Made by a program: the position numbers and the translations under genes. A DNA stretch of 64,000 nucleotides, taken from positions 29,078,001-29,142,000 of the forward strand of contig NC_135759.1 in NCBI RefSeq assembly GCF_052425735.1, read 5' to 3'. This document shows positions 4,535 to 61,780 of the stretch, in pieces (the first letter of the stretch is position 1; each line of letters begins with the position of its first letter). Below the pieces are notes generated by a model. That model searched no databases and was not told the origin of the DNA. It saw only the letters and a list, made by a program, of their open reading frames with translations. This stretch comes from Oculina patagonica. Its lineage: Eukaryota.

Positions 4535-5482
4535 TTATCTCTCTCTTTTCGTTTTGCAGAAAAACATCCGAGAGCATTCTTTCTTAATATCTCTCTTAAA
4601 AAGTGCGTAGGCGAAAGGATTTGCACCTGAATTTATAATCAGAAGCAGAGCTAAGGTATATCTAACAACTTCCTCTGGTTGCGATTTTCTACAAGACGTA
4701 AAACAAGCACACAACGAAGATAAAGACTGGCATATGTAACAGGCTAAAAATACTCCAACCATAATACTGATCAAGCGAGCTGAAGAAGCTTCTGATTTTC
4801 CTTGCATGAGGCGGCTCGGCTGGTTGAACTTCAGCTGCTTCAATAGCAGTGATGTGCGCCTCGAATGCTTGCTTGCTATCTTAATCATTTGTCGCGTTGC
4901 TATCGCTAAGAAAAAACACGGCGAGATCTGAAAAATCACCATGCTTGTAATTTGTGCGATCTTCTCATTTGACAACAAAAGTGTGGGAATTGTATCCAAA
5001 ATGAACGGCGCCAACCAAGCAGACATCAGAGTGAGACCGATCTTCGTCTTGGTCATTATGCTTGGGTACTTGAGAGGCATGACTATAGCAAAATAGCGAT
5101 CCACAGTGAAGGCAATTATGTTAGTAACAGAAACTTCCCCAAAGTAAGAGACTAAATACAGGATCACTATTGAGTGGCTACAGCCAACCATCTGGCAGGA
5201 GAAATGAGGCGGAATAAATACAACAACTAACATGAGATCTGCTGTGGCGAGCGAGAAAACAAACCAGTTTGCTTTGGTGCGAAGCCGACGGCGGGTCATG
5301 ATGAGATATATAACCAGAGCGTTGCCAAGTATTGCTATGATAGTAAGGACCAACGAGACGATCCAAAACCACATTGCTGAAGAATCTTGAAAAAATACAG
5401 TTCTTGCTAATGTAGGAACGACGCGAAGTTGATTTTCCTCGGTGATAAAATTGATTTGGCATTTATTTATGTAAATTGACAT
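4535..5482 (-). CDS. Orphan class A GPCR, intronless CDS (cluster family)
   Basis: GN in TM1, LATAD in TM2, DRY, NSGANPFAY, helix 8 FKRDIKKE. The start may instead be the ATG at 5374 (MWFWIV), which follows a pyrimidine-rich AG. Confidence 0.92.
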   Translation of the reverse strand: MSIYINKCQINFITEENQLRVVPTLARTVFFQDSSAMWFWIVSLVLTIIAILGNALVIYLIMTRRRLRTKANWFVFSLATADLMLVVVFIPPHFSCQMVGCSHSIVILYLVSYFGEVSVTNIIAFTVDRYFAIVMPLKYPSIMTKTKIGLTLMSAWLAPFILDTIPTLLLSNEKIAQITSMVIFQISPCFFLAIATRQMIKIASKHSRRTSLLLKQLKFNQPSRLMQGKSEASSARLISIMVGVFLACYICQSLSSLCACFTSCRKSQPEEVVRYTLALLLIINSGANPFAYALFKRDIKKECSRMFFCKTKRER

Positions 5483-6672: not shown

Positions 6673-7096
6673 ATGTTTAAAAAAAAATTAAAATTAAATT
6701 AAAAGACTTTTACCATTTCTTTTGACGGCAACGATTCAACAGCCTCGAGCTCATTAATTACAGCCTTGAAAACTGTATAATTACTAGCTCTAGTTCCATT
6801 CTTGTTCATTTATGAAACGAGCATTTTTTTAGTGTAGTGACACAACCAAACCATTTAAGTTAAATAATAACATTAACCAACAACAACAAGAATATTACAA
6901 CAGCAAGAACAACAACAACAACAACAGCAAAATAAACGTCAAAGGTGATATTTATTTAAACGTTTAATTCTAACAATTTTTGCAGGTTGAACTTCATTGC
7001 ATTATTGTGCAAGATTAAAATATTACTATTAGCATCAGTTATAAGTGTTCTTAATTGTTAAGGACATCCACCTTTGGTAACATTTTTGGCTCATCA

Positions 7097-7794
7097 TTAA
7101 AACCGTTTCTGGTAACGGATACGGATTTTACGAACTGCTTTTCTGAGTATCTTCCTAAGTCGGCGACGACGAAACGTCCTTCGGAACCAGCCTGGTCTGG
7201 GTCGGGGGTCCTCTTGCCTCTCACTAAAACAGGATAAAAGAAACAGGGTTAAACTCCCAAAAAGATACTATTAGGAATATATTTCCCAGGGTTTGCTGTC
7301 AACGGTATATTAATCGTAAAACGTTCAAACTTTGAGAATATGAAGTGATTCTCTTGTCAAAAATAACTTACATGTAAGAACAGGGATTAAACGTCTCTTC
7401 ACTGAAATTTCTCTGTGATCGCATGGTGTCAGCAACGAAATGTGGGAAAGTGTGTTTCTATTGCAGGACAAACCCTTCTCGCTTACCTTTGATATTCTCC
7501 CAATTCTTCGTCATTTTGGTCTTCGTCGTCATCATCATCATCTTCAAAGGGATCGGCGGGTTTGACTTCAACATCAAGATCATCACTCTCATCATTGTCA
7601 TCATTCATGCCATCATTATCGTCTTCTACGGCGCTATCTTCGTCATTGAACTCATCCGGAGAGGTCAGCTTCTGTTCATCACGTTCTATTCCATTGTACT
7701 CATCATAAGCTGAGTCCGGGATTCGTGACTTGACGGCCTGCAAAGCACAGCCAAGAAACAATCCCACAAGAGCAAACACCACTATACCTCTCAT
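7097..7794 (-). CDS. Secreted prepropeptide (144 aa): signal peptide, acidic pro-region and cationic C-terminal peptide; arminin-like antimicrobial peptide candidate
   Basis: Exon 1 is 7794-7487 (MRGIVVFALVGLFLGCALQA, D/E-rich, donor AG|GTAAGC). Exon 2 is 7223-7097 (acceptor cttttatcctgttttag, phase 2) and encodes SERQEDPRPRPGWFRRTFRRRRLRKILRKAVRKIRIRYQKRF*. AATAAA lies at 6951-6956 on the minus strand. Confidence 0.88.
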
Positions 7795-7872: not shown

Positions 7873-8179
7873 AAGACCAACCAGGAAGTAATGAAGTTTT
7901 AAATTTAGCTCTCGGTGTTCACGTTGAAACACAATATATAAAATTGCCTCAGAAGATTCTCAGAAGAGATTTTATTTCTGCCTTAGTTCCTAAAATAAAA
8001 CGATTTTGTTACTGTGGTTTTTGAAAGGTTTTGATAACGTTCTTCGGTTAGACATCCAATTACGTCATAAATCACGATAGGCGCAAACGTACCGATGCTT
8101 ACATGGAATTTGCTAGACGTTTGGCATTTTGCTTAAAAAATGACAATGCTTTACTTTACTTTTTACAACTTGCTGAGGC

Positions 8180-19053: not shown

Positions 19054-19325
19054 CTTGTATGTGGGATTTTACTGTATTTCTGGTGCGATTTACATAAACA
19101 AGGCTGTAACTTTTACACTGCTGATGTTCGAATCGTAGAATTGCGAATTGTGCGTACTCTCTGTGTAAGCATATCACAGTCTTTGATAAACTATAACGAC
19201 CCTATAACGGGAAGTCGATTAAAAGAGCGTGTTCCGTATACCCCTAACTAGAGGACCAAGGCTATCGTGGTTTACTTTTTACATTCACATTGGGAACTTA
19301 TTCTTTTATTTCTGACAACAGTGAG

Positions 19326-20309
19326 ATGAACGAAACGAATTCAAGCGTTTCATCAAGTGAAGTACTTCTACCAAGTGTGGCTTACTGGTCTCTCAAGGCC
19401 ATCATATCCATTGTGGCTGTTCTTGGAAATGGTGTAGTAATGTGGTTAATCTGTACCAGGAGACGGTTACATTGCACAGCAAACTGGTATGTTCTGTCAT
19501 TGGCTTCAGCTGACTTTTGCACTGGCTTAATTATTACACCATCGGAACTCATTTGTCTTTGGAAACCTGCCATGTGTATTTGGCCATTGGTGGTGCGCGG
19601 TTCCTTTTACAACTATCCAGTCAACGTATCGATATGTTGCCTTTGCGTGCTGACATTTGACCGTTATCTCTGTGTGTTATCTCCGTTACAATACACTAGA
19701 CGCATGACGTCAAAACTGGTAGTTGGTCTTATATCCTTGTCGTGGATATTACCAGGGATTTTGACCTTCGTCAGCCTTTTCTGGCTTAAAGCTCCAACCA
19801 ACATACAAGACACCGCTAATAAAGTTCTCACGCTTATTCAGATTTTCCTCGTGTCATTCCTGCCTTCGATCTTTTTAGTTTACGCGTACACTAGAATATT
19901 GTTTGCGGCTATGAAACAGTGGCGACGATCGGCCGAACACATTTCTCAGCTGCGATTTAATCACGTGGAAGACGAATGCGAGCGAGTTAAGTCCCAAGGA
20001 GGTCGCGAGCGTTCTTCGACAGTGAAAATACTCGGTTTTGTTATAACATTCTTTGTGTTGTGTTGGATCCCCTCTGTGTATCGTGCCATATGCGGAGCTT
20101 TCCTCCCGTGTACTGTGTCTGCACCTATCGTGCAAATCTCACGGCTTCTCATTTTACTAAACTCAGGAATGAACTTCGCCGTTTATGCGTTCTTAAAGCA
20201 GGATATTCGCAAAGAACTGTGCAAGACGTGTCGAAAGACAAGAGGTCGATCGAGGGAAAGCTTCCATCTGATGGAACGTTCGTCTAGAGCTTCTAGTAAT
20301 CAGTTATGA
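19326..20309 (+). CDS. Orphan class A GPCR, intronless CDS
   Basis: ATG 19326 (MNETNSS, N-glycosylation sites); GN, LASAD, DRY, CWIP, NSGMNFAVY, LKQDIRKEL. Confidence 0.95.
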   Translation: MNETNSSVSSSEVLLPSVAYWSLKAIISIVAVLGNGVVMWLICTRRRLHCTANWYVLSLASADFCTGLIITPSELICLWKPAMCIWPLVVRGSFYNYPVNVSICCLCVLTFDRYLCVLSPLQYTRRMTSKLVVGLISLSWILPGILTFVSLFWLKAPTNIQDTANKVLTLIQIFLVSFLPSIFLVYAYTRILFAAMKQWRRSAEHISQLRFNHVEDECERVKSQGGRERSSTVKILGFVITFFVLCWIPSVYRAICGAFLPCTVSAPIVQISRLLILLNSGMNFAVYAFLKQDIRKELCKTCRKTRGRSRESFHLMERSSRASSNQL

Positions 20310-39403: not shown

Positions 39404-40450
39404 TTACTGTTTGTTTAAACTTGTTGTATTCCTCTTTAGGGCTACCATGCAGATGCGCGTCGTAGCAAATTCCGCTCGCAAATCACTTTTGAACAAAATA
39501 AATACGATCGGATTTATTGCAGGGTTGAAAATCATAAAGAGCCACGTGATTCTAACAAATGTCAATGGTACATTGCACAGTCCGAGATACCGGCAAAATG
39601 ATGCGTACAAGGACAAAGACCAACATACAAGAAAAATTGTTATAACTGCAATAATTACTTTTACGGAAGATCTCTTCAATCGCCCTCGCTGTATCTTTTT
39701 TCGAAATTCTTTATTGCTTCTTACTTCTAGTCTTGAAAACGAACGATGACCACTGAATGAGTTTTCTTGAGAATCTACATGTACCTTAGTTTGCCTTGTA
39801 TTGTCTTTGTAGACAGCCCTTTTCTCACGCTCGCTCGGACCACTGGATGAAGTTAAAATGGATCCAATTTTATTGAAGTTTATTCCATGCAATTGAGCTA
39901 TGGTTCTTTTTGAATGCAACCTGGCTACCTGGATTATCTGTACATTTGCCACCATTAACAAAATGCAAGGAATGGCCACCATGAAAATCGTTTCCATAAT
40001 GGTAAAAATGCGAAACCATGTCGTTCTTGTTGCAGGGTCTGCATAGAGCCAAGAGAAGTGAAGACCAAAATTCACAATGGGTATTCCCCACGAAATTGCA
40101 ATCGTCTTCACGGAACCAGCCGTAGTCATACAATTTGGATACTTCAAAGGGTAAACAATGGCAATATAGCGATCAACTGTCACTGCACACAGATTAAAAA
40201 TTGATTCGTACAGAAAGAGTTCTTCGAAGGCACTTTTTAGATAAACGTCACACGTTTCTAACTTCTTACATGCAATGTATAATGGTGTGATGATCAAACC
40301 AACCAAGAGATCACTGACAGCAAGCGATAGAATAAGCCAGTTGGTGGTATTGTGAAGTTTCGCTCTTGTTGTGATCATCCAAACGACGAGTCCGTTTCCT
40401 ATTATTGCAATGATACTGATAGTCAGACTTGTACACATGTACCAAGACAT
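39404..40450 (-). CDS. Orphan class A GPCR, intronless CDS, long ICL3 and acidic TM3
   Basis: GN, LAVSD, DRY, NPAINPIVF, FKSDLRAEF; almost no N-terminal extension. Confidence 0.95.
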   Translation of the reverse strand: MSWYMCTSLTISIIAIIGNGLVVWMITTRAKLHNTTNWLILSLAVSDLLVGLIITPLYIACKKLETCDVYLKSAFEELFLYESIFNLCAVTVDRYIAIVYPLKYPNCMTTAGSVKTIAISWGIPIVNFGLHFSWLYADPATRTTWFRIFTIMETIFMVAIPCILLMVANVQIIQVARLHSKRTIAQLHGINFNKIGSILTSSSGPSEREKRAVYKDNTRQTKVHVDSQENSFSGHRSFSRLEVRSNKEFRKKIQRGRLKRSSVKVIIAVITIFLVCWSLSLYASFCRYLGLCNVPLTFVRITWLFMIFNPAINPIVFILFKSDLRAEFATTRICMVALKRNTTSLNKQ

Positions 40451-42563: not shown

Positions 42564-44251
42564 AGTGTCTTTTTTAAATGCAAAGTTTTAATTTAAAAAA
42601 CTGGGACTAAAATGCTGCTTCTAATTAATCTCTAATGGCAGAGTCAGCCATGGTGTTAGGGATGCCTTCGAAAACTATCTTGCAATCTTAGATTATTTGA
42701 AATTTCTGCATGATGAACGTTGCCGCGAGATCGTGGACAAAAACACAAAAAATAAGCCATTCGCATAATATAGTAAAAAGAGTCGAGCAACTATTTTCAT
42801 ATCGACGTTTTGTATTATTGTTGTTGGTGCTGGGAATTTATCTGTGAACACTTAAAATAGCACGTTTAATTTTCTGCTGATTTACATATACTTCAATTAC
42901 TGTCGAGGTTTTGTCTTGTTTACGTTAGCATAAAAGAAGTATGCTTGTTATGTCTGCTTAGCAAAAAGCCTAAGTAAAATAGAAAAAAATAAGCTTTTAC
43001 AATAAACAACTCTAGTGTAAAAGCAGGGTTAACTATTGCTATTGTGATGGATTTGAAATTATGAAGTGCACGTAAATAAACAAAAAAAAAAACATAAAGC
43101 AATCATACTTTTGTACCACAAATGTTCAGTCCATCTTCAATATCTTCAATTGAATACTTCTTTAGTGCCATACAATTACTACCTTTTTTTTCTGCTGTTT
43201 CTTTTGCAGGTGAGAAACATCTGCCACATCAAGCTATCACTCTAAAGCTGACATTCTTTAAAGATGGCGGCCTTTTATGTTCTTTAGGATTAATTAACTT
43301 TGATTTAAATCACTGGTAATATACAACTACTGTCAACACATAAAATAAGAGTTAGAGGTTCTACTAATCTGCCTCAACTTGAAATTTTCTCTTCTCTTTC
43401 AATTCCCGGGCTTTGTTGAATGCCCGCTAATTTGAAGCTTACAATGTTAGTGTTAGTTTGTTTTTCTCTTTGGTTTACAGTTCCTGAAAGTTTCTTGGAC
43501 AACTACCAAATTCATTTTATTTAAAATTTCAAGTAAGCGCTATACTATTTTTGCAATCTAAGATAACGATCATGTGATTTATCTTGCTGTTATATGATAA
43601 CTTCATAAAATATTTCTTAATGGACTTTTTATCTTTATTGAGCCTTTTTATTTTTTGTGGCCTACGCATCAAGAAAATATATTTCTATAAAAAGATGTTT
43701 TGGAAAAAATCGTCCAGTTTTACCTCTTTAACTGTGAAAAGAGCGTACAACAAATGCGACTAAAAATTAAAACGTATATTAAAAAAGCCTTTTCATAAAA
43801 TGACCGTTTACAAATTTATTTAATTTTTTTCCGACACATTCAAATTTGATCTATATGCCAAGCGTACACACTTCAAAAACAATAAGTAATTTCAATTTCA
43901 ATACCTTTTCTAGGGCCCTTTTTAGCTGTTCCATTATTTGAGAGGGGGCGGTCGCTGTTGATTTTATACAGGTGTCGAGAAGTGCTGATAAATATACTAA
44001 CAAATCCACCAGTACTAGTATAAATCATTAAACATTTGATCGAGATCATGGCATCGTGACGACGACTAACCGTTGCCGATGAAGAATGGACAATTTATCC
44101 TTCTTTATACCGAAAAGGCAAGGGTTCGATTTACTCGTTGTATAGAATTTTCTTTGTTAAAAAGGGACGTTCAGTTGAGATGGTAACTGACTAAAGTAAG
44201 TGGATTGCAAATATATCAAGGAAACGTAATTTTTTTTTATGAAAAGCTGTG

Positions 44252-45250
44252 ATGATGAAAAACGAGACCTTTACCAACGCTGAATCAAACAACAACAGTT
44301 CAAGTTCGTTGCCACTCTACTACTTCGTCCTCGCACCGCTTATAGCGTTCGTTGCCGTGCTTGGAAATGGAATAGTGATCTACCTCATTTGCACAAGAAG
44401 GCGACTCCATGTAATGACTAACTACTTTGTAGTTTCTCTTGCTGCGGCAGATTTCTTGGTAGGCCTGTTTCTTCCTAGTTTTATCATCGCTTGTAATTTT
44501 TGGTCGGACTGTGAAATCACTATTTACAACATGTTCTTTAACCTGTTCACCTTAGTCTCAATAGCGAATTTATTTGTCATGACAGTCGACCGATATATAT
44601 CCATAGTTCATCCATTGCGTTATCAGTCGTATGCCACTTCCAAGCGACTAGTTGGTGCTATGTTAGCATCCTGGATCATTCCAGCCCTGCTATCGTTCTC
44701 TCCTCTCTTCTGGAAATATTCAAGCTCAGAGAAAGTCAAGAGTTCGGCAACAAAGGTTCACGCATTTATTGTTATAACTGTATTCGAACTTGTACCCACG
44801 GTTGTCATGCCAGCAATGTACATGCATATTTTTCGCACCGCAAGAAAACACGCACGGCAGGTCGCAGTGCAAAGAACACAACTTGAGTTCAACAGCACAC
44901 ACAGTGAAGTTTTCAGTGAAAAGAATACGCTTGAAATGACAGCACCAACAAGCAAAAGAATTTCTTATGCCTCACAGCAAAAGAAAGGGGAAAGGACGAC
45001 CGATGGATCAAGCATTGCCGTGTTGGGAGCTGTTATCGGTCTTTTTGTTTTGTGTTGGTCGTTTGATACCGTTATTTCGTTTTGCAGTAAATTAGAATTA
45101 TGCGTTATAAATGATGGCCTTTTTAGGGTATCCGACCTGTTGATTTTTGTGAATTCTGCTATTAATCCACTCGTTTATGCCTTTTTGAAGAAGGACATTA
45201 AACGAGAACTTAATGTTGTTTGCCGCTGTACCTTAAGAGAAAATGAGTGA
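44252..45250 (+). CDS. Orphan class A GPCR, intronless CDS
   Basis: ATG 44252 (MMKNETF); GN, LAAAD, DRY, NSAINPLVY, LKKDIKREL. Confidence 0.95.
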   Translation: MMKNETFTNAESNNNSSSSLPLYYFVLAPLIAFVAVLGNGIVIYLICTRRRLHVMTNYFVVSLAAADFLVGLFLPSFIIACNFWSDCEITIYNMFFNLFTLVSIANLFVMTVDRYISIVHPLRYQSYATSKRLVGAMLASWIIPALLSFSPLFWKYSSSEKVKSSATKVHAFIVITVFELVPTVVMPAMYMHIFRTARKHARQVAVQRTQLEFNSTHSEVFSEKNTLEMTAPTSKRISYASQQKKGERTTDGSSIAVLGAVIGLFVLCWSFDTVISFCSKLELCVINDGLFRVSDLLIFVNSAINPLVYAFLKKDIKRELNVVCRCTLRENE

Positions 45251-46580: not shown

Positions 46581-49516
46581 TTACAGACACGAGTTCTTGA
46601 TAATCACATCTGTGCATATTTTGCAGCTGCATGGCTCATCAACACTGGCTTTGCAATTACAAAATCTCTTCTGGTACGTTGCTTCTCTTTTGTAACCACG
46701 ACCACAGCACATAAAGGTGCAATCATCTTCCTTGTGAGTGTTTCTTTGGCACCGGCGGCCGCGTGTTCCCGAAATGTTGTACTCATCTTGGCGGTAACAG
46801 TAAGAGGGGGACTGATTGAGGTAAGCCAGGGAAGACTTTTTTGGTTTTTTGCCATTAGGTCGGCCATTGTATTTCCCAACGGCTCGTAGATAAAACGACC
46901 TTTTTCGTTCTCGCCTTTTGGCAATGACCCTGGTAGCTTTATAATATTTTGCTTTAAGAATCCGGCTGATCTTTTGGAGTGATGGTAAAGTTAAGTGACA
47001 CGACTTTACTCTGCCTGATTTTCCCACCGTGCATTTGACCACTCTATTTTCATTTAATGCCTGATGAAAGTGAAAAGAAATCATTCAAAAATGAATGAAA
47101 TGAACTCGTCTTCCAATATAGAGAGAATTTAACAAGTTAAATATGTATTTTCTCGAATTTATTAAACTTTTTATTCCTGTACCAAAAGAGGGAAATTATT
47201 CGAGGAAAACCAATTAATCAAGGGAGCGATTATTTCAAATATTTCAAGTCCCGGCTTATTTGAACACGCACAGAGTGCTTATACTGATTGCCAATCAGCT
47301 TTTAGAGCATTAAAGTCTGAGTCTGCGCACAAAGACTAGAAGTCAGTGTATCGCGGACTTTTCTATTGGAATTTTCTATTTCTCAATTGCCCATAATACA
47401 TTTTGTTTCCCCCCCCCCCCCCCCCAAAAAAATTTTGCATAAACTATTGTTTTCAAATTCTCTTGGGAGGACTGCATATTTCCAAAACAATAGTTTATGC
47501 AAAATTTGGGGGGCAAACAAAGTGCATTATGGGCAATTGGCCATGGAAAATAGAGAATAGGCCGAGACTTTGCTAGAGCCTGCGTTCTTGTTGCTGACCA
47601 AAAAAGCGGGCTCTGGGAACAAGATTGTTGAAACCTAAGAAAAAGTGACTGATCTTACTGGCCATGATATACTCTAAACCAGTTATCTTCTCAATCCATT
47701 TTATTCATTACTCCTTACTGTTGCTTCGATAAAATTATATGAGACGTGCAGATGAATTATGAGTTGACCGTTTCAATGCCAACAAAATAAAAAGAAACGC
47801 AACCAGGAACCTGAAAGTTCTAACAACATCGAGAATATGATCTGCATACGCAAAACCCTTTCTTCAGTATCCCCTGCTTTCTTTTCACAGTCCGTCGCAT
47901 CATATTACAAGAGTGAGAAAAGTTTCTAGATTATTAGTTGCATTATTATACTTACCTCAAGTCCAACTCTAACATTTTGTTTCATTATTGTGTTCATCTC
48001 ACTGTTGTTGCCTCTCCCACTCAACATAAACCGCTCGGCAGAGTAAGTTCCAAATCGCACGTTTTCACTGCACCCCCGCCATTTCCAGGATTGACCATTC
48101 AAAGGGCGTTTGACTCCCTCGCAGCTGCATTCCGTTACATCTTTTGCTGTGCAGGCCTTCGCCACGCTGAAAGCTATTGCTGCTGACAGTAATGCGGTGG
48201 TAAAAGCTGCTTCTTTGGTTCCATCTGTAGAGGGAGATTATAATAATAATATATGTTTTTAGAAGGCTTTCCCTGGAATTAAAACCTGAAGAATCACTCA
48301 TAGGCATTAGTTAGACTCAACCTTAATTAAAGCTGTCATGGTTCTATTTTAATTTAAGTTTACCGATACGGTTACGATGCTGCCTACAAAGATAACCTAT
48401 ATTCTCCTCTTTTATTATAGCCCTTCCGTCTACCTAAATTTAACAAGAAGGAACCCTTTTGGGAAAACAGTAGTAAATTTAAGGATAATAGTTTCACAAA
48501 CTTAGACTCGAAACAGGTAGATAGGACAAAATACCTCGTAATAAAAGACTATGTAACGTCTACAATTGCAACAAAATTGAAGGATGAAACTTACTTTTTG
48601 TTAGATTGCCAAAGCTATTCTCCTATACGAGACATATTCTTCTCTAAAATAGAACCTAAAACCCCATGCTACGATTATTATCACATGAAACCTTATTATC
48701 ACTTCGTATGAATTCCACTGACTGCTTTATAAACATTCAGCTACCCAATTTTATTTATATCGGCGTGCTTTGAATTGAGAGACAATCTCTTTACAATGTT
48801 CACCCCTTGAATGGTTAAAAATGGAGGGGAGATTTGGGTGTCGGGTGCCGAGTGTGGGGGTCTCTGACGATTATTGTAATTCTTTTTATTTTATTTTACT
48901 CTGATGAGATTTGACGCCAGGCAGGCTGCCGGAGCAGGTCCGCTCCCTTTCTGGCCGGTGGCTTGAGTCTTATTGTTTGGAAGCCTTGTCTTCTGTTTTA
49001 CTAGTTATCTTAGTTAATTGGGGGAAATAACAAGTAAAGCTGGCTTTTGCAATAGGGCTTCTGTATTCTGATTTACTTGGTTGGGTCCTTATTTTCTTTT
49101 TCGAAGTCGATGACGTCATCATGCAGTCCTCTTCTCCTTTTTTTTTTTCTTTTTTTTTTTCTTTTTTTTTTCCTATCTCTTTTTTCCTTTTCCTTTTTAT
49201 AAAGCTTGTTATTGTTGCCTCAACAAAGTTAAAACACAATATAACAAGGGTTACATGTTTCTATACCGCGTGTTTTCCTTTTTTTCTTTTTGGTTTCTAA
49301 TTAACTCTCCACTACCAGTTGGGCGTCTGTTGTATTATTACGATATGAATAATTAATGAGTTTGAAAAAAGAAATGCTCTGCGTTAGTCATAACTAGCCG
49401 CAGCAGCAGCGAAAAAGCTGTAAAAGATGCAGATGCAGCAGCAAAAATAACAACACGAACAAGAACAAGAACAACATTCGACGACAATGACGACGACGAT
49501 GGCAGCGGCGAAGAGC

Positions 49517-54664: not shown

Positions 54665-55636
54665 CTATGGCCGCGAGCGCCCGCTCAGCCTGGTAAGACT
54701 AACTCCTCTAACAGTAGCTAATACCTCGTTTTGGCATTTAAACAACCTTCTCAGTTCCGCCCGAAAATCCATCTTGAGCAGAGCGTACACAATAAAATTA
54801 ACAGCACAGTTTACATGAACCATAAGCAAGGAGGCGATGCGCACATTAGCAGATGCAGAACACAGCCTAAAATTTGAACAAAAAGATACGTATATGCTGA
54901 TAAAATAGCAAGCTACAAACAGTGAAATAACTGCCCCTAGAATTTTGGCAGATACTCGTGCCCGTTCGTTTCTGTTTTTCATACGATGAGTAGTGTTAAA
55001 TGATAGCTGTGCTCTTTGAGATGCGACGTGTCGAGAATGCTTACCTATTATTGCCAGAATTCTTACGTAAATTACCGCGAGTAGAAGGCAAGAAAATATG
55101 CCAAACCATAAATCTATTAAGATCCGGTAATAGATATCTACTTTGGCCCTTAAATTCTTATCATATAGCCATAACAGACGAATTGATGAAGCGAGCAGTG
55201 AGGTAATCCACGGTAATGATATTATGATTATTGTTCGCTTGGTTGTCATTCGGTCAATGTATCTCAAAGGGCATACGATGGCATTATAGCGGTCGTAAGC
55301 CATTGCCCACAAGTTTAAAGTAGATGCAAATAGCAAAAAGTTATAGAAGACAAGTTGCGGGCGCCAGTCGCACCTTACCCAGTAGGAACAGGCTAATCCA
55401 GTTGGTGTGACCAACAACCCGACACAGAAGTCTGATATGGCGAGAGATATGATGAACCAGTTGCAAGTCACCTGGAGACTCTTCCTTGCCGTAATTAGGA
55501 AAATAACAAATCCGTTGCCTAAGACGGTGATTACGGAGATGATTATTCTTAAAGACCAGTACCATGTTATCTGAGGTTCTAGTGAATAATGCTTTCGCAT
55601 TGAATGATCGATCTTTACCTCTGTTGTATTATTCAT
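54665..55636 (-). CDS. Orphan class A GPCR, intronless CDS
   Basis: MNNTT; GN, LAISD, DRY, NCAVNFIVY, LKMDFRAEL. Confidence 0.95.
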   Translation of the reverse strand: MNNTTEVKIDHSMRKHYSLEPQITWYWSLRIIISVITVLGNGFVIFLITARKSLQVTCNWFIISLAISDFCVGLLVTPTGLACSYWVRCDWRPQLVFYNFLLFASTLNLWAMAYDRYNAIVCPLRYIDRMTTKRTIIIISLPWITSLLASSIRLLWLYDKNLRAKVDIYYRILIDLWFGIFSCLLLAVIYVRILAIIGKHSRHVASQRAQLSFNTTHRMKNRNERARVSAKILGAVISLFVACYFISIYVSFCSNFRLCSASANVRIASLLMVHVNCAVNFIVYALLKMDFRAELRRLFKCQNEVLATVRGVSLTRLSGRSRP

Positions 55637-60772: not shown

Positions 60773-61780
60773 ATGGATCGCATACGTGAGAGAGATGCGT
60801 ATTGGTATTGGATTGTAGTAGTCTTTATCGGAGTGACAACAGTTTGTGGAAACACGGTGGTTATATATTTAATCTTGACGCGGAGATGTCTTCACATCAC
60901 AGCCAACTGGTTTATACTCTCACTGTCGTTCGCAGATTTACTCGTTGGACTGGTGGTGATACCAACATACATTATCCATACGTTCTGGGTACAATTAAAC
61001 CTTCATGCACTGTTGAAATTCTACAACCTTATTTTATATGTGTCAGTTGGCAACTTGTGTGTTATGACTGGAGATAGATATCTTGCCATCACAAGACCAT
61101 TGAATTACGTCTCACTTATGACTCGGTCGAAGGTCCTGATAATGATATTTACTGCCTGGTCAATACCTGCAGGTATTTCACTTTTATCTCTGCTGTGGCA
61201 AACGTCGGACACGAACGGAAAAACGGACACAGTACATAGAGTATACGGTGGCTTAACTGTGGTGTGCTTCGAAGTTATTCCGTGCTTAATGATGCTTTTA
61301 GTGTACTTTCACTTATATTTAATAACACGAGCTCATTCTCGTAGGATCGCTGCACAGGAAAGTGTGAAGGAACGTCACAGCGGAGAAAAATTTACGAAAA
61401 GAAGAAGACAAAGAAATAGGGAGAGGTCCAATCTGAAAGTGTTCGCATCAGTTGCGCTGTTGTTCGTCTTTTGCTGGCTTCTTTCAGCCTATCGTGGATT
61501 TTGCCACGTGTTCAGCCTGTGCTCTGTGACCATAGAATTTGTACAAGTATCCAGAATCCTCATTTTCTTAAATTCTGCGGTTAATGTTGTAGTGTATTCC
61601 TTTCTGAAGAGGGATATAAGGACAGAGTTGAAACGTTTATTGAGGTGCCGAACACGTCAAGAATCGCTTGACTTTAGTCTCGTGCGTATACAGGAGTCAA
61701 CAGTGGCGAATCGTTCGCTGGAGGTTGAGACAGAAGCACCAAAGAACGGTCAACAAGAACCGGGACCTAGTGTGAATTAG
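60773..61780 (+). CDS. Orphan class A GPCR, intronless CDS
   Basis: GN, LSFAD, DRY, NSAVNVVVY, LKRDIRTEL. Confidence 0.95.
   Translation: MDRIRERDAYWYWIVVVFIGVTTVCGNTVVIYLILTRRCLHITANWFILSLSFADLLVGLVVIPTYIIHTFWVQLNLHALLKFYNLILYVSVGNLCVMTGDRYLAITRPLNYVSLMTRSKVLIMIFTAWSIPAGISLLSLLWQTSDTNGKTDTVHRVYGGLTVVCFEVIPCLMMLLVYFHLYLITRAHSRRIAAQESVKERHSGEKFTKRRRQRNRERSNLKVFASVALLFVFCWLLSAYRGFCHVFSLCSVTIEFVQVSRILIFLNSAVNVVVYSFLKRDIRTELKRLLRCRTRQESLDFSLVRIQESTVANRSLEVETEAPKNGQQEPGPSVN

Follow-up and report, generated by a model that had tools for sequence, protein, structure and literature searches.

The 64-kb window, i.e. the whole stretch of DNA that was analysed, carries on its minus strand a gene of two exons which, judged by comparison with orthologous loci, is real, was previously unannotated and encodes a secretory prepropeptide. 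It appears to represent an unannotated new family within a known kind of molecule, namely secreted peptide precursors with an anionic pro-part and a cationic mature part. By analogy with such precursors we give a probability of roughly 0.5 to the reading that the secreted precursor would release a cysteine-free helical polycation acting as a host-defence effector.

Gene model and precursor product

Strand reading and scripted splicing gave a gene that starts with an ATG at 7794 and consists of exon 1 (7794-7487) and exon 2 (7223-7097). If exon 1 is left unspliced its ORF stops at 7485-7483, and this TAA lies within the consensus splice donor AAAG/GTAAGC. The acceptor at the other end of the 263-nt intron is the pyrimidine-rich TTTTAG/T. 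Joining 7487 to 7223 yields an in-frame CDS of 435 nt and a product of 144 aa. This hidden second exon had been proposed in the original prediction, and both the comparative evidence and the transcript of an orthologue described below bear the gene model out. A second AG is found 6 nt 3' of the acceptor (TTTTAG/TGAGAG/G; 7217-7225, minus strand), forming a NAGNAG-like alternative whose use would remove Ser-Glu in frame; it is also present in loci L011 and L012 and absent from the other loci.

The product begins with a signal-type N-terminus of approximately 20 residues, built of an n-region MRG, a hydrophobic core of 15 residues and then the small residues GCA/LQA. It is followed by an Asp/Glu-rich region, the sequence Q-E-D-P-R-P-R-P and a tail comprising the last 31 residues. 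As had been predicted, the tail holds 12 Arg and 4 Lys but no Asp/Glu and no Cys, which corresponds to a net charge of +16 and an Arg+Lys content of 52%; the predicted succession of signal, acidic pro-region and cationic cysteine-free part is likewise present in the spliced 144-aa product. From the end of the signal peptide to the RP of the junction motif the pro-region has a net charge of -32. The whole precursor comes to -16, and 25 of its 144 residues are Asp. Only one copy of the gene is located in the window.

A TATA box and a polyadenylation signal had also been predicted and both are present (see the table of features). The TATA box is kept in 7 of 8 aligned orthologous loci, and several blocks upstream of the gene are kept across the loci as well. 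On the orthologous contig L020 the 5' end lies approximately 55 nt upstream of the ATG, which in a loose alignment is close to the start site expected downstream of the TATA box. AATAAA is a candidate signal, as the cDNA contigs of the orthologue extend past the corresponding site, in one case by more than 370 nt. Some further elements were noticed in these flanks: a block resembling an ETS site, ACTTCC[GT]G (7881-7889, minus strand), is situated just upstream of the TATA box and kept in all 8 aligned promoters, the block GCAGAA.TA.A.TCTCT..TGAGAAT is likewise conserved at a distance of about 150 nt 5' of the ATG, and a (TTG)n microsatellite at 6900-6935 (minus strand), which has a shorter form in the closest loci, is found just downstream of AATAAA.

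The gene is surrounded by at least 10 intronless ORFs for class-A (rhodopsin-type) GPCRs that are distributed on both strands across the window. Cnidarian receptor clusters are the nearest to the GPCR that follows the peptide gene directly on its downstream side, and a downstream GPCR neighbor recurs in loci L004, L005 and L006. Receptors of cnidarian type, together with the Tara origin of some relatives of the gene, agree with the coral assumed in the original prediction, most likely a stony coral. In L004 the order DUF4559 ORF, peptide gene, GPCR is the same as in the window, which indicates an orthologous region.

Features of the peptide gene and its neighborhood in the window (GPCR, G protein-coupled receptor)
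Feature	Position	Strand	Remark
TATA box TATAAAA	7866..7872	-	72 nt upstream of ATG
Signal peptide and start codon	7735..7794	-	about 20 residues; putative cleavage site
Acidic pro-region, exon 1 part	7487..7734	-	LDVEVK.AD.F and NDEELGEYQ blocks
Intron	7224..7486	-	263 nt, GT-AG, phase 2
Exon 2 start, S-E-R then QEDP-RP-RP	7193..7223	-	motif at 7216-7193, invariant in family
Cationic Cys-free 31-mer (GWF...KRF)	7100..7192	-	net charge +16
Stop codon TAA	7097..7099	-	read from sequence
AATAAA, candidate polyadenylation signal	6951..6956	-	141 nt after stop; kept in most aligned loci
GPCR ORFs	1291-2028, 4535-5482, 19290-20309, 27898-28908, 31169-32164	both strands in set	
GPCR ORFs	35713-36147, 39404-40450, 44249-45250, 54665-55636, 60773-61780	both strands in set	
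DUF4559 ORF, 336 aa	11612-12622	-	match to DUF4559, E 2.6e-11; hydrophobic C-terminus; upstream of peptide gene
Wnt gene, last exon	46581-47084	-	Pfam wnt, E 6e-29

Conservation, splicing and extent of the family

A search with exon 1 returned 16 unnamed proteins, every one of them an ORF call ending in ...GEY[QH]R with its stop within the splice donor. We inspected the contigs behind these matches, which belong to coral-type metagenome and SRA assemblies. Nine distinct loci share a donor AG/GTAA, an acceptor [CT]AG/TGA behind a pyrimidine tract and phase 2, with introns of 263-494 nt. Their second exon reads S-[DE]-x-QEDPRPRPGWFRK...RIRY[QE]K[RK]F, the stop follows K[RK]F at the identical position in 9 of 9 loci, and indels within this exon comprise whole codons only. 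Four further contigs (L008-L010 and L016) end short of the position expected for exon 2.

Among orthologues exon 2 is 71-86% identical. Pairwise dN/dS (Nei-Gojobori) ranges from about 0.02 to 0.75 in most pairs and is mostly near 0.3; the value of 1.19 against the closest relative is based on small counts, the high ratios of the two closest pairs being derived from fewer than 10 substitutions. Between L005 and L003, 10 synonymous changes face 1 non-synonymous change. In distant pairs intron identity falls to 0.42-0.58 while the exons can still be aligned. The acidic region has accumulated many indels and is the part least constrained in length, and the pro-region is no better conserved between orthologues than the tail. 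By these comparisons exon 2 is under purifying selection. Since the same splice phase is kept in 9 loci, its frame can hardly be a chance ORF, and the excess of synonymous changes, together with the junction found spliced in two orthologue contigs, further argues for a real coding exon.

The spliced form was found by a wider profile search, which returned a protein of 138 aa (P0044) in which ...ELGEY-D-S-DVQEDP... runs directly into the cationic tail. It is encoded on two contigs, L019 and L020, from two SRA runs. When aligned to the genomic locus L013, positions 38-359 correspond to 1273-1597 and positions 358-701 to 2065-2440, so that both contigs are without exactly the predicted 469-nt intron of L013. 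The evidence for the junction thus comes from contigs of an orthologue and not from the window genome. We infer that L019 and L020, and with them the SRA runs, are RNA-derived, because they follow the genomic 3' flank and differ abruptly from each other at the 5' end.

In the 5' part of L019 (1-405) the terminal portion of an ORF with three ShK domains (Pfam E 1e-22) comes first, together with its stop and trailer; the peptide mRNA then takes over 24 nt ahead of the ATG. No ShK ORF adjoins the peptide gene in the window or at the other loci, and the join on L019 is probably a chimeric assembly. We also considered a retrogene or intron loss as the origin of L019 and L020. This is unlikely, as the L013 3' flank is matched beyond AATAAA; the sharp upstream difference and the unrelated ShK ORF on L019 fit a chimeric RNA assembly.

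Profile searches extended the family to 66 proteins. All are unnamed and come exclusively from Logan, ENA and JGI assemblies, some of them from Tara metagenome samples, and no annotated NCBI or UniRef protein was among the matches. Run against 1.84 billion proteins, the profile of the signal and acidic exon matched coral-type ORFs only. The 66 proteins have in common the acidic region and a very similar signal peptide (...FAL[VL]GLFLGC[AT]LQAVKS...), which is the best conserved part of the superfamily with invariant L, F, L, G, L, Q and S. Pfam gave sub-threshold noise only and PDB sequences nothing, a word search with exon 2 in a set of 5.8 billion proteins returned no candidates, and the junction motif strings had no match in a full-text literature search. 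Neighbors in the ESM Atlas, i.e. osteopontin/BSP clusters for exon 1 (≤0.83) as well as HCV core and adenovirus protein VII for exon 2 (≤0.48), were set aside as compositional and taken as no evidence of kinship. Gene callers miss the family: the database ORF calls stop inside the splice donor, and most expression and proteome studies of corals therefore probably lack it.

Outside the signal peptide, the strongest conservation is found in the junction QEDP-xP-RP. Two distant paralogues, L015 and L017, originate from one sample and are located on separate contigs of about 1 Mb; their exon 1 ends in ...EDPR and the phase-2 intron is kept. Their exon 2 again reads ...QEDP-AP-RP-(G)W and then continues into Arg-rich tails of quite another sequence, 58 and 33 residues long, which end in Pro-rich, Pro/Arg/Ile-Val-rich stretches. 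Including these two, the 11 aligned exon-2 peptides all keep Q, E, D, P, P, R, P and W. The X-Pro run that had been pointed out before the tail is accordingly a fixed property of the family, DP-[RA]P-RP being invariant in 11 of 11 aligned members. The residue preceding the junction Gln is variable (R, V, L, I, D or E). A further subfamily of the P0021 type (P0021, P0023, P0032-P0038 and others), mostly from Tara-type metagenomes and with one cluster of 79 members, uses the same signal/acidic cassette and ends in ...DNDRLEK. For this type a cationic exon was not found within 2 kb downstream in L018, where a weak donor ACAG/GTTGGA is present.

Two additional arrangements were noticed. Contig ctg20967 (ERZ25067872; 1.65 Mb) carries two paralogues, L001 and L004, approximately 80 kb apart. 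Every part of the two has a dN/dS of 0.6-0.7, and one of them is followed 4 kb downstream by a retrotransposon polyprotein of the Ty1/copia type. P0019, an ORF of 150 aa in another assembly, begins with the N-terminal half of a GPCR and continues, without a change of frame, into the latter half of the acidic region (...DLDVEVKAAD...GEYHR). Its GPCR half closely resembles the window receptor at 4535-5482, and the fusion could be due to rearrangement or mis-assembly or could mark a pseudogene.

Predicted processing and rival readings

Using the exon-2 alignment, AlphaFold2 predicted that residues 12-41 of exon 2 form a helix (mean pLDDT 76, core 74-89), which begins exactly at the Gly-Trp after the X-Pro run. 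For the full precursor we modelled the spliced orthologue P0044 in place of the window protein. This model, which is of low confidence, runs from a signal helix through a disordered acidic stretch of about 85 residues to a helix at the C-terminus, and contains no globular fold. The original prediction had seen in the tail an RK-hydrophobic periodicity suited to an amphipathic helix. This did not hold up: the hydrophobic moment of the 31-mer is 0.16 as compared to 0.27 +/- 0.13 in composition-matched shuffles (p=0.76), and the best windows of 11-18 residues gave shuffle p-values of 0.04-0.4. Arminin 1a-C yielded a moment of 0.15 and p=0.74 in the same test. Since this bactericidal peptide behaves identically, the test speaks neither for nor against an antimicrobial role.

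The layout, the invariant junction and the absence of any fold are the reasons why we read the product as a prepropeptide. The signal peptide would direct the precursor into the secretory pathway, where the anionic pro-region (-32) would keep the polycationic tail (+16) masked while the precursor is transported and stored. Cleavage at or close to the invariant junction would then free a Cys-free peptide of about 31-38 residues. Judged by known cnidarian precursor processing (PMC7523074), its N-terminus might arise in two ways: a dipeptidyl aminopeptidase could strip DP, RP and RP to leave GWF..., or trimming could stop at the invariant Gln and give a pyroglutamate-protected peptide of 38 residues. 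The freed peptide would become helical on polyanionic surfaces and could serve as an antimicrobial or as a membrane- or polyanion-binding effector. The working thus proposed for the coral precursor is that of Hydra arminins, promelittin and other precursors with an anionic pro-part and a cationic mature part, and an antimicrobial function is plausible. Several properties fit it less well. The tail is full of RR, KR and RK pairs at which prohormone convertases could cut it small, its good conservation among orthologues contrasts with the hypervariability that mature peptides show in many AMP families, and the single copy in the window does not form a tandem AMP cluster.

The net acidity of the precursor also counts against the antimicrobial reading, and because the whole protein comes to -16 some weight has to be given to an unprocessed product. 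This would be a small secreted acidic protein, binding calcium or belonging to the skeletal or extracellular matrix, whose basic tail anchors it to polyanions or folds back on the acidic part. Besides its charge, its Asp content and the lack of a classical dibasic site between pro-region and tail agree with it, as do language-model neighbors of exon 1 in osteopontin and bone sialoprotein clusters, which at 0.71-0.76 stay under the lead threshold. We nevertheless hold it to have a rather small chance. The conservation of QEDP-xP-RP resembles a signal for processing or N-terminal protection, the acidic region itself is indel-rich and poorly constrained in length, and in the paralogues the tails have changed completely yet are still polycationic. 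In addition neither Pfam nor PDB gave a match to a known matrix protein family. That the feature is non-functional, a chance pair of ORFs or a pseudogene, is very improbable: although its matches include no annotated NCBI or UniRef protein and the transcript comes from an orthologue, structure, frame and stop are kept in 9 loci with dN/dS <1, the promoter is conserved and the orthologous transcript is spliced.

The location among clustered class-A GPCR genes of cnidarian type, at least 10 in number, and the recurrence of a downstream GPCR at other loci suggest that the gene could instead encode a signalling peptide, possibly one directed at one of the neighboring receptors. The active part would be, for example, pyroGlu-EDPRPRPGWF, cut at RR/RK, or else short pieces of the tail. 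A fixed QEDP-xP-RP-(G)W in front of a variable tail speaks for this reading, and cnidarian neuropeptides commonly have a pyroGlu or X-Pro N-terminus and stop at basic residues (PMC7523074). However, no Gly precedes the RR/RK after GWF, hence there is no amidation signal, each precursor holds one copy, and the candidate peptide contains Glu-Asp. The peptides in cnidarian neuropeptide preprohormones are short, free of acidic residues and often present in several copies, and they end in Gly plus basic residues (PMC7523074). The residue before the Gln is not conserved, the tail is under purifying selection with a fixed stop in a manner unlike a mere spacer, and GPCR neighbors are to be expected anyway in an orthologous GPCR-rich region. 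Taken together we regard a signalling role as unlikely. Slightly less likely still is a polycation of cnidocytes or gland cells, either a linear cytolytic venom peptide or a counter-ion condensing polyanions in secretory capsules. Promelittin of bee venom is the precursor of a venom cytolysin and has the anionic-pro/cationic-mature layout, as do the cupiennin precursors of spider venom (PMC7889660). The extreme charge density of the tail and the joining of one cDNA contig to an ShK-domain transcript, probably an assembly chimera, point in this direction as well, but with a mean hydrophobicity as low as -0.78 (Eisenberg scale) the tail seems poorly suited to lysing the zwitterionic membranes of animals.

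Comparison with known precursor systems

To our knowledge the only characterised stony-coral AMPs are cysteine-rich, ShK-like molecules. A conserved, transcribed, Cys-free family of polycationic peptides would add a second candidate effector type in corals, with possible relevance to the control of the coral microbiome and to resistance against Vibrio disease. In Hydra, arminins are AMPs that have been shown to shape species-specific microbiota, and the family would give this system a coral counterpart. The invariant QEDP-xP-RP junction offers a concrete, testable candidate for a processing signal.

The prediction had set the tail apart from damicornin and AmAMP1 as Cys-rich peptides, which agrees with their description as six-Cys, ShK-related folded molecules (PMC11767717). 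The coral precursor resembles these in its stony-coral host and in being a secreted precursor for a cationic peptide. It differs in that its mature part is without Cys and is predicted to form a single helix in place of a fold with six Cys.

In promelittin X-Pro dipeptides stand directly before the mature N-terminus and are substrates for stepwise removal by dipeptidyl aminopeptidase. Prepromelittin moreover resembles the coral precursor, as read here, in having a signal, a helical cationic peptide and an anionic propiece to neutralise it, with X-Pro at the junction, whereas precursors of the frog dermaseptin type share the two-exon plan and a conserved prepro cassette joined to a variable mature part. 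In contrast to prepromelittin, cupiennin and frog precursors, only three X-Pro dipeptides are found here, and the other approximately 80 residues of the pro-region would need an endoprotease. There is no sequence similarity to these precursors, the coral subfamily lacks a C-terminal amidation signal, and its tail is far less hydrophobic and far more charged. For cnidarian peptide precursors processing at acidic residues and N-termini beginning with Q or X-Pro have been described, and a dipeptidyl aminopeptidase has been proposed (PMC7523074).

The closest likeness in layout is to the arminins. In these the signal peptide precedes an anionic N-terminal part, which is conserved, and a cationic C-terminal part, which varies (PMC4820302; PMC6217004), and bipartite anionic/cationic precursors are typical of Hydra AMPs (PMC10945409). 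Arminin 1a-C has 31 residues, is Cys-free and carries a charge of +13 (PMC6217004); it is helical only in a membrane mimic and bactericidal (PMC6217004; PMC4820302). The similarity of layout and physico-chemistry proposed for the coral gene stands up to this comparison: signal, anionic front and a Cys-free cationic tail of 31 residues are found in both, with +16 in the coral and +13 in arminin 1a-C. On the other hand the cationic part of arminins is described as poorly conserved, while the coral tail is well conserved among orthologues. Arminins are reported to be confined to Hydra and arranged in tandem clusters (PMC10945409), whereas the coral gene is present as one copy in the 64-kb window and elsewhere as two paralogues 80 kb apart.

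Kinship is a different matter. The tails of the family and of arminin 1a-C align in one register that is always anchored at [KR]-P-(G)-W, and in the window tail 10 of the first 16 aligned positions are identical to arminin 1a-C. Against composition-matched shuffles the local alignment scores of five family members reached p-values of 0.02-0.37, a comparison that included the arminin 1a-C 31-mer only. The sequence similarity behind the term arminin-like is thereby marginal, and the exon-1 profile matched coral-type ORFs only. We regard it as improbable that a single ancestral cnidarian gene gave rise to both the coral family and the Hydra arminins; in such a reading the same cassette may also drive other polycationic tails in corals, such as those of L015 and L017. 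If this were true, arminins would not be orphan genes of Hydra, the ancestor of anthozoans and medusozoans would already have possessed linear Cys-free host-defence peptides, and both groups would share a secretory/acidic cassette together with an Arg-rich 31-mer initiated by [KR]-P-(G)-W. In view of the marginal score, the coral-only profile matches and the reported confinement of arminins to Hydra, we classify the coral gene as arminin-type in its working and not as an arminin: it would be an analogue that works like an arminin-type precursor rather than a demonstrated member of that family.
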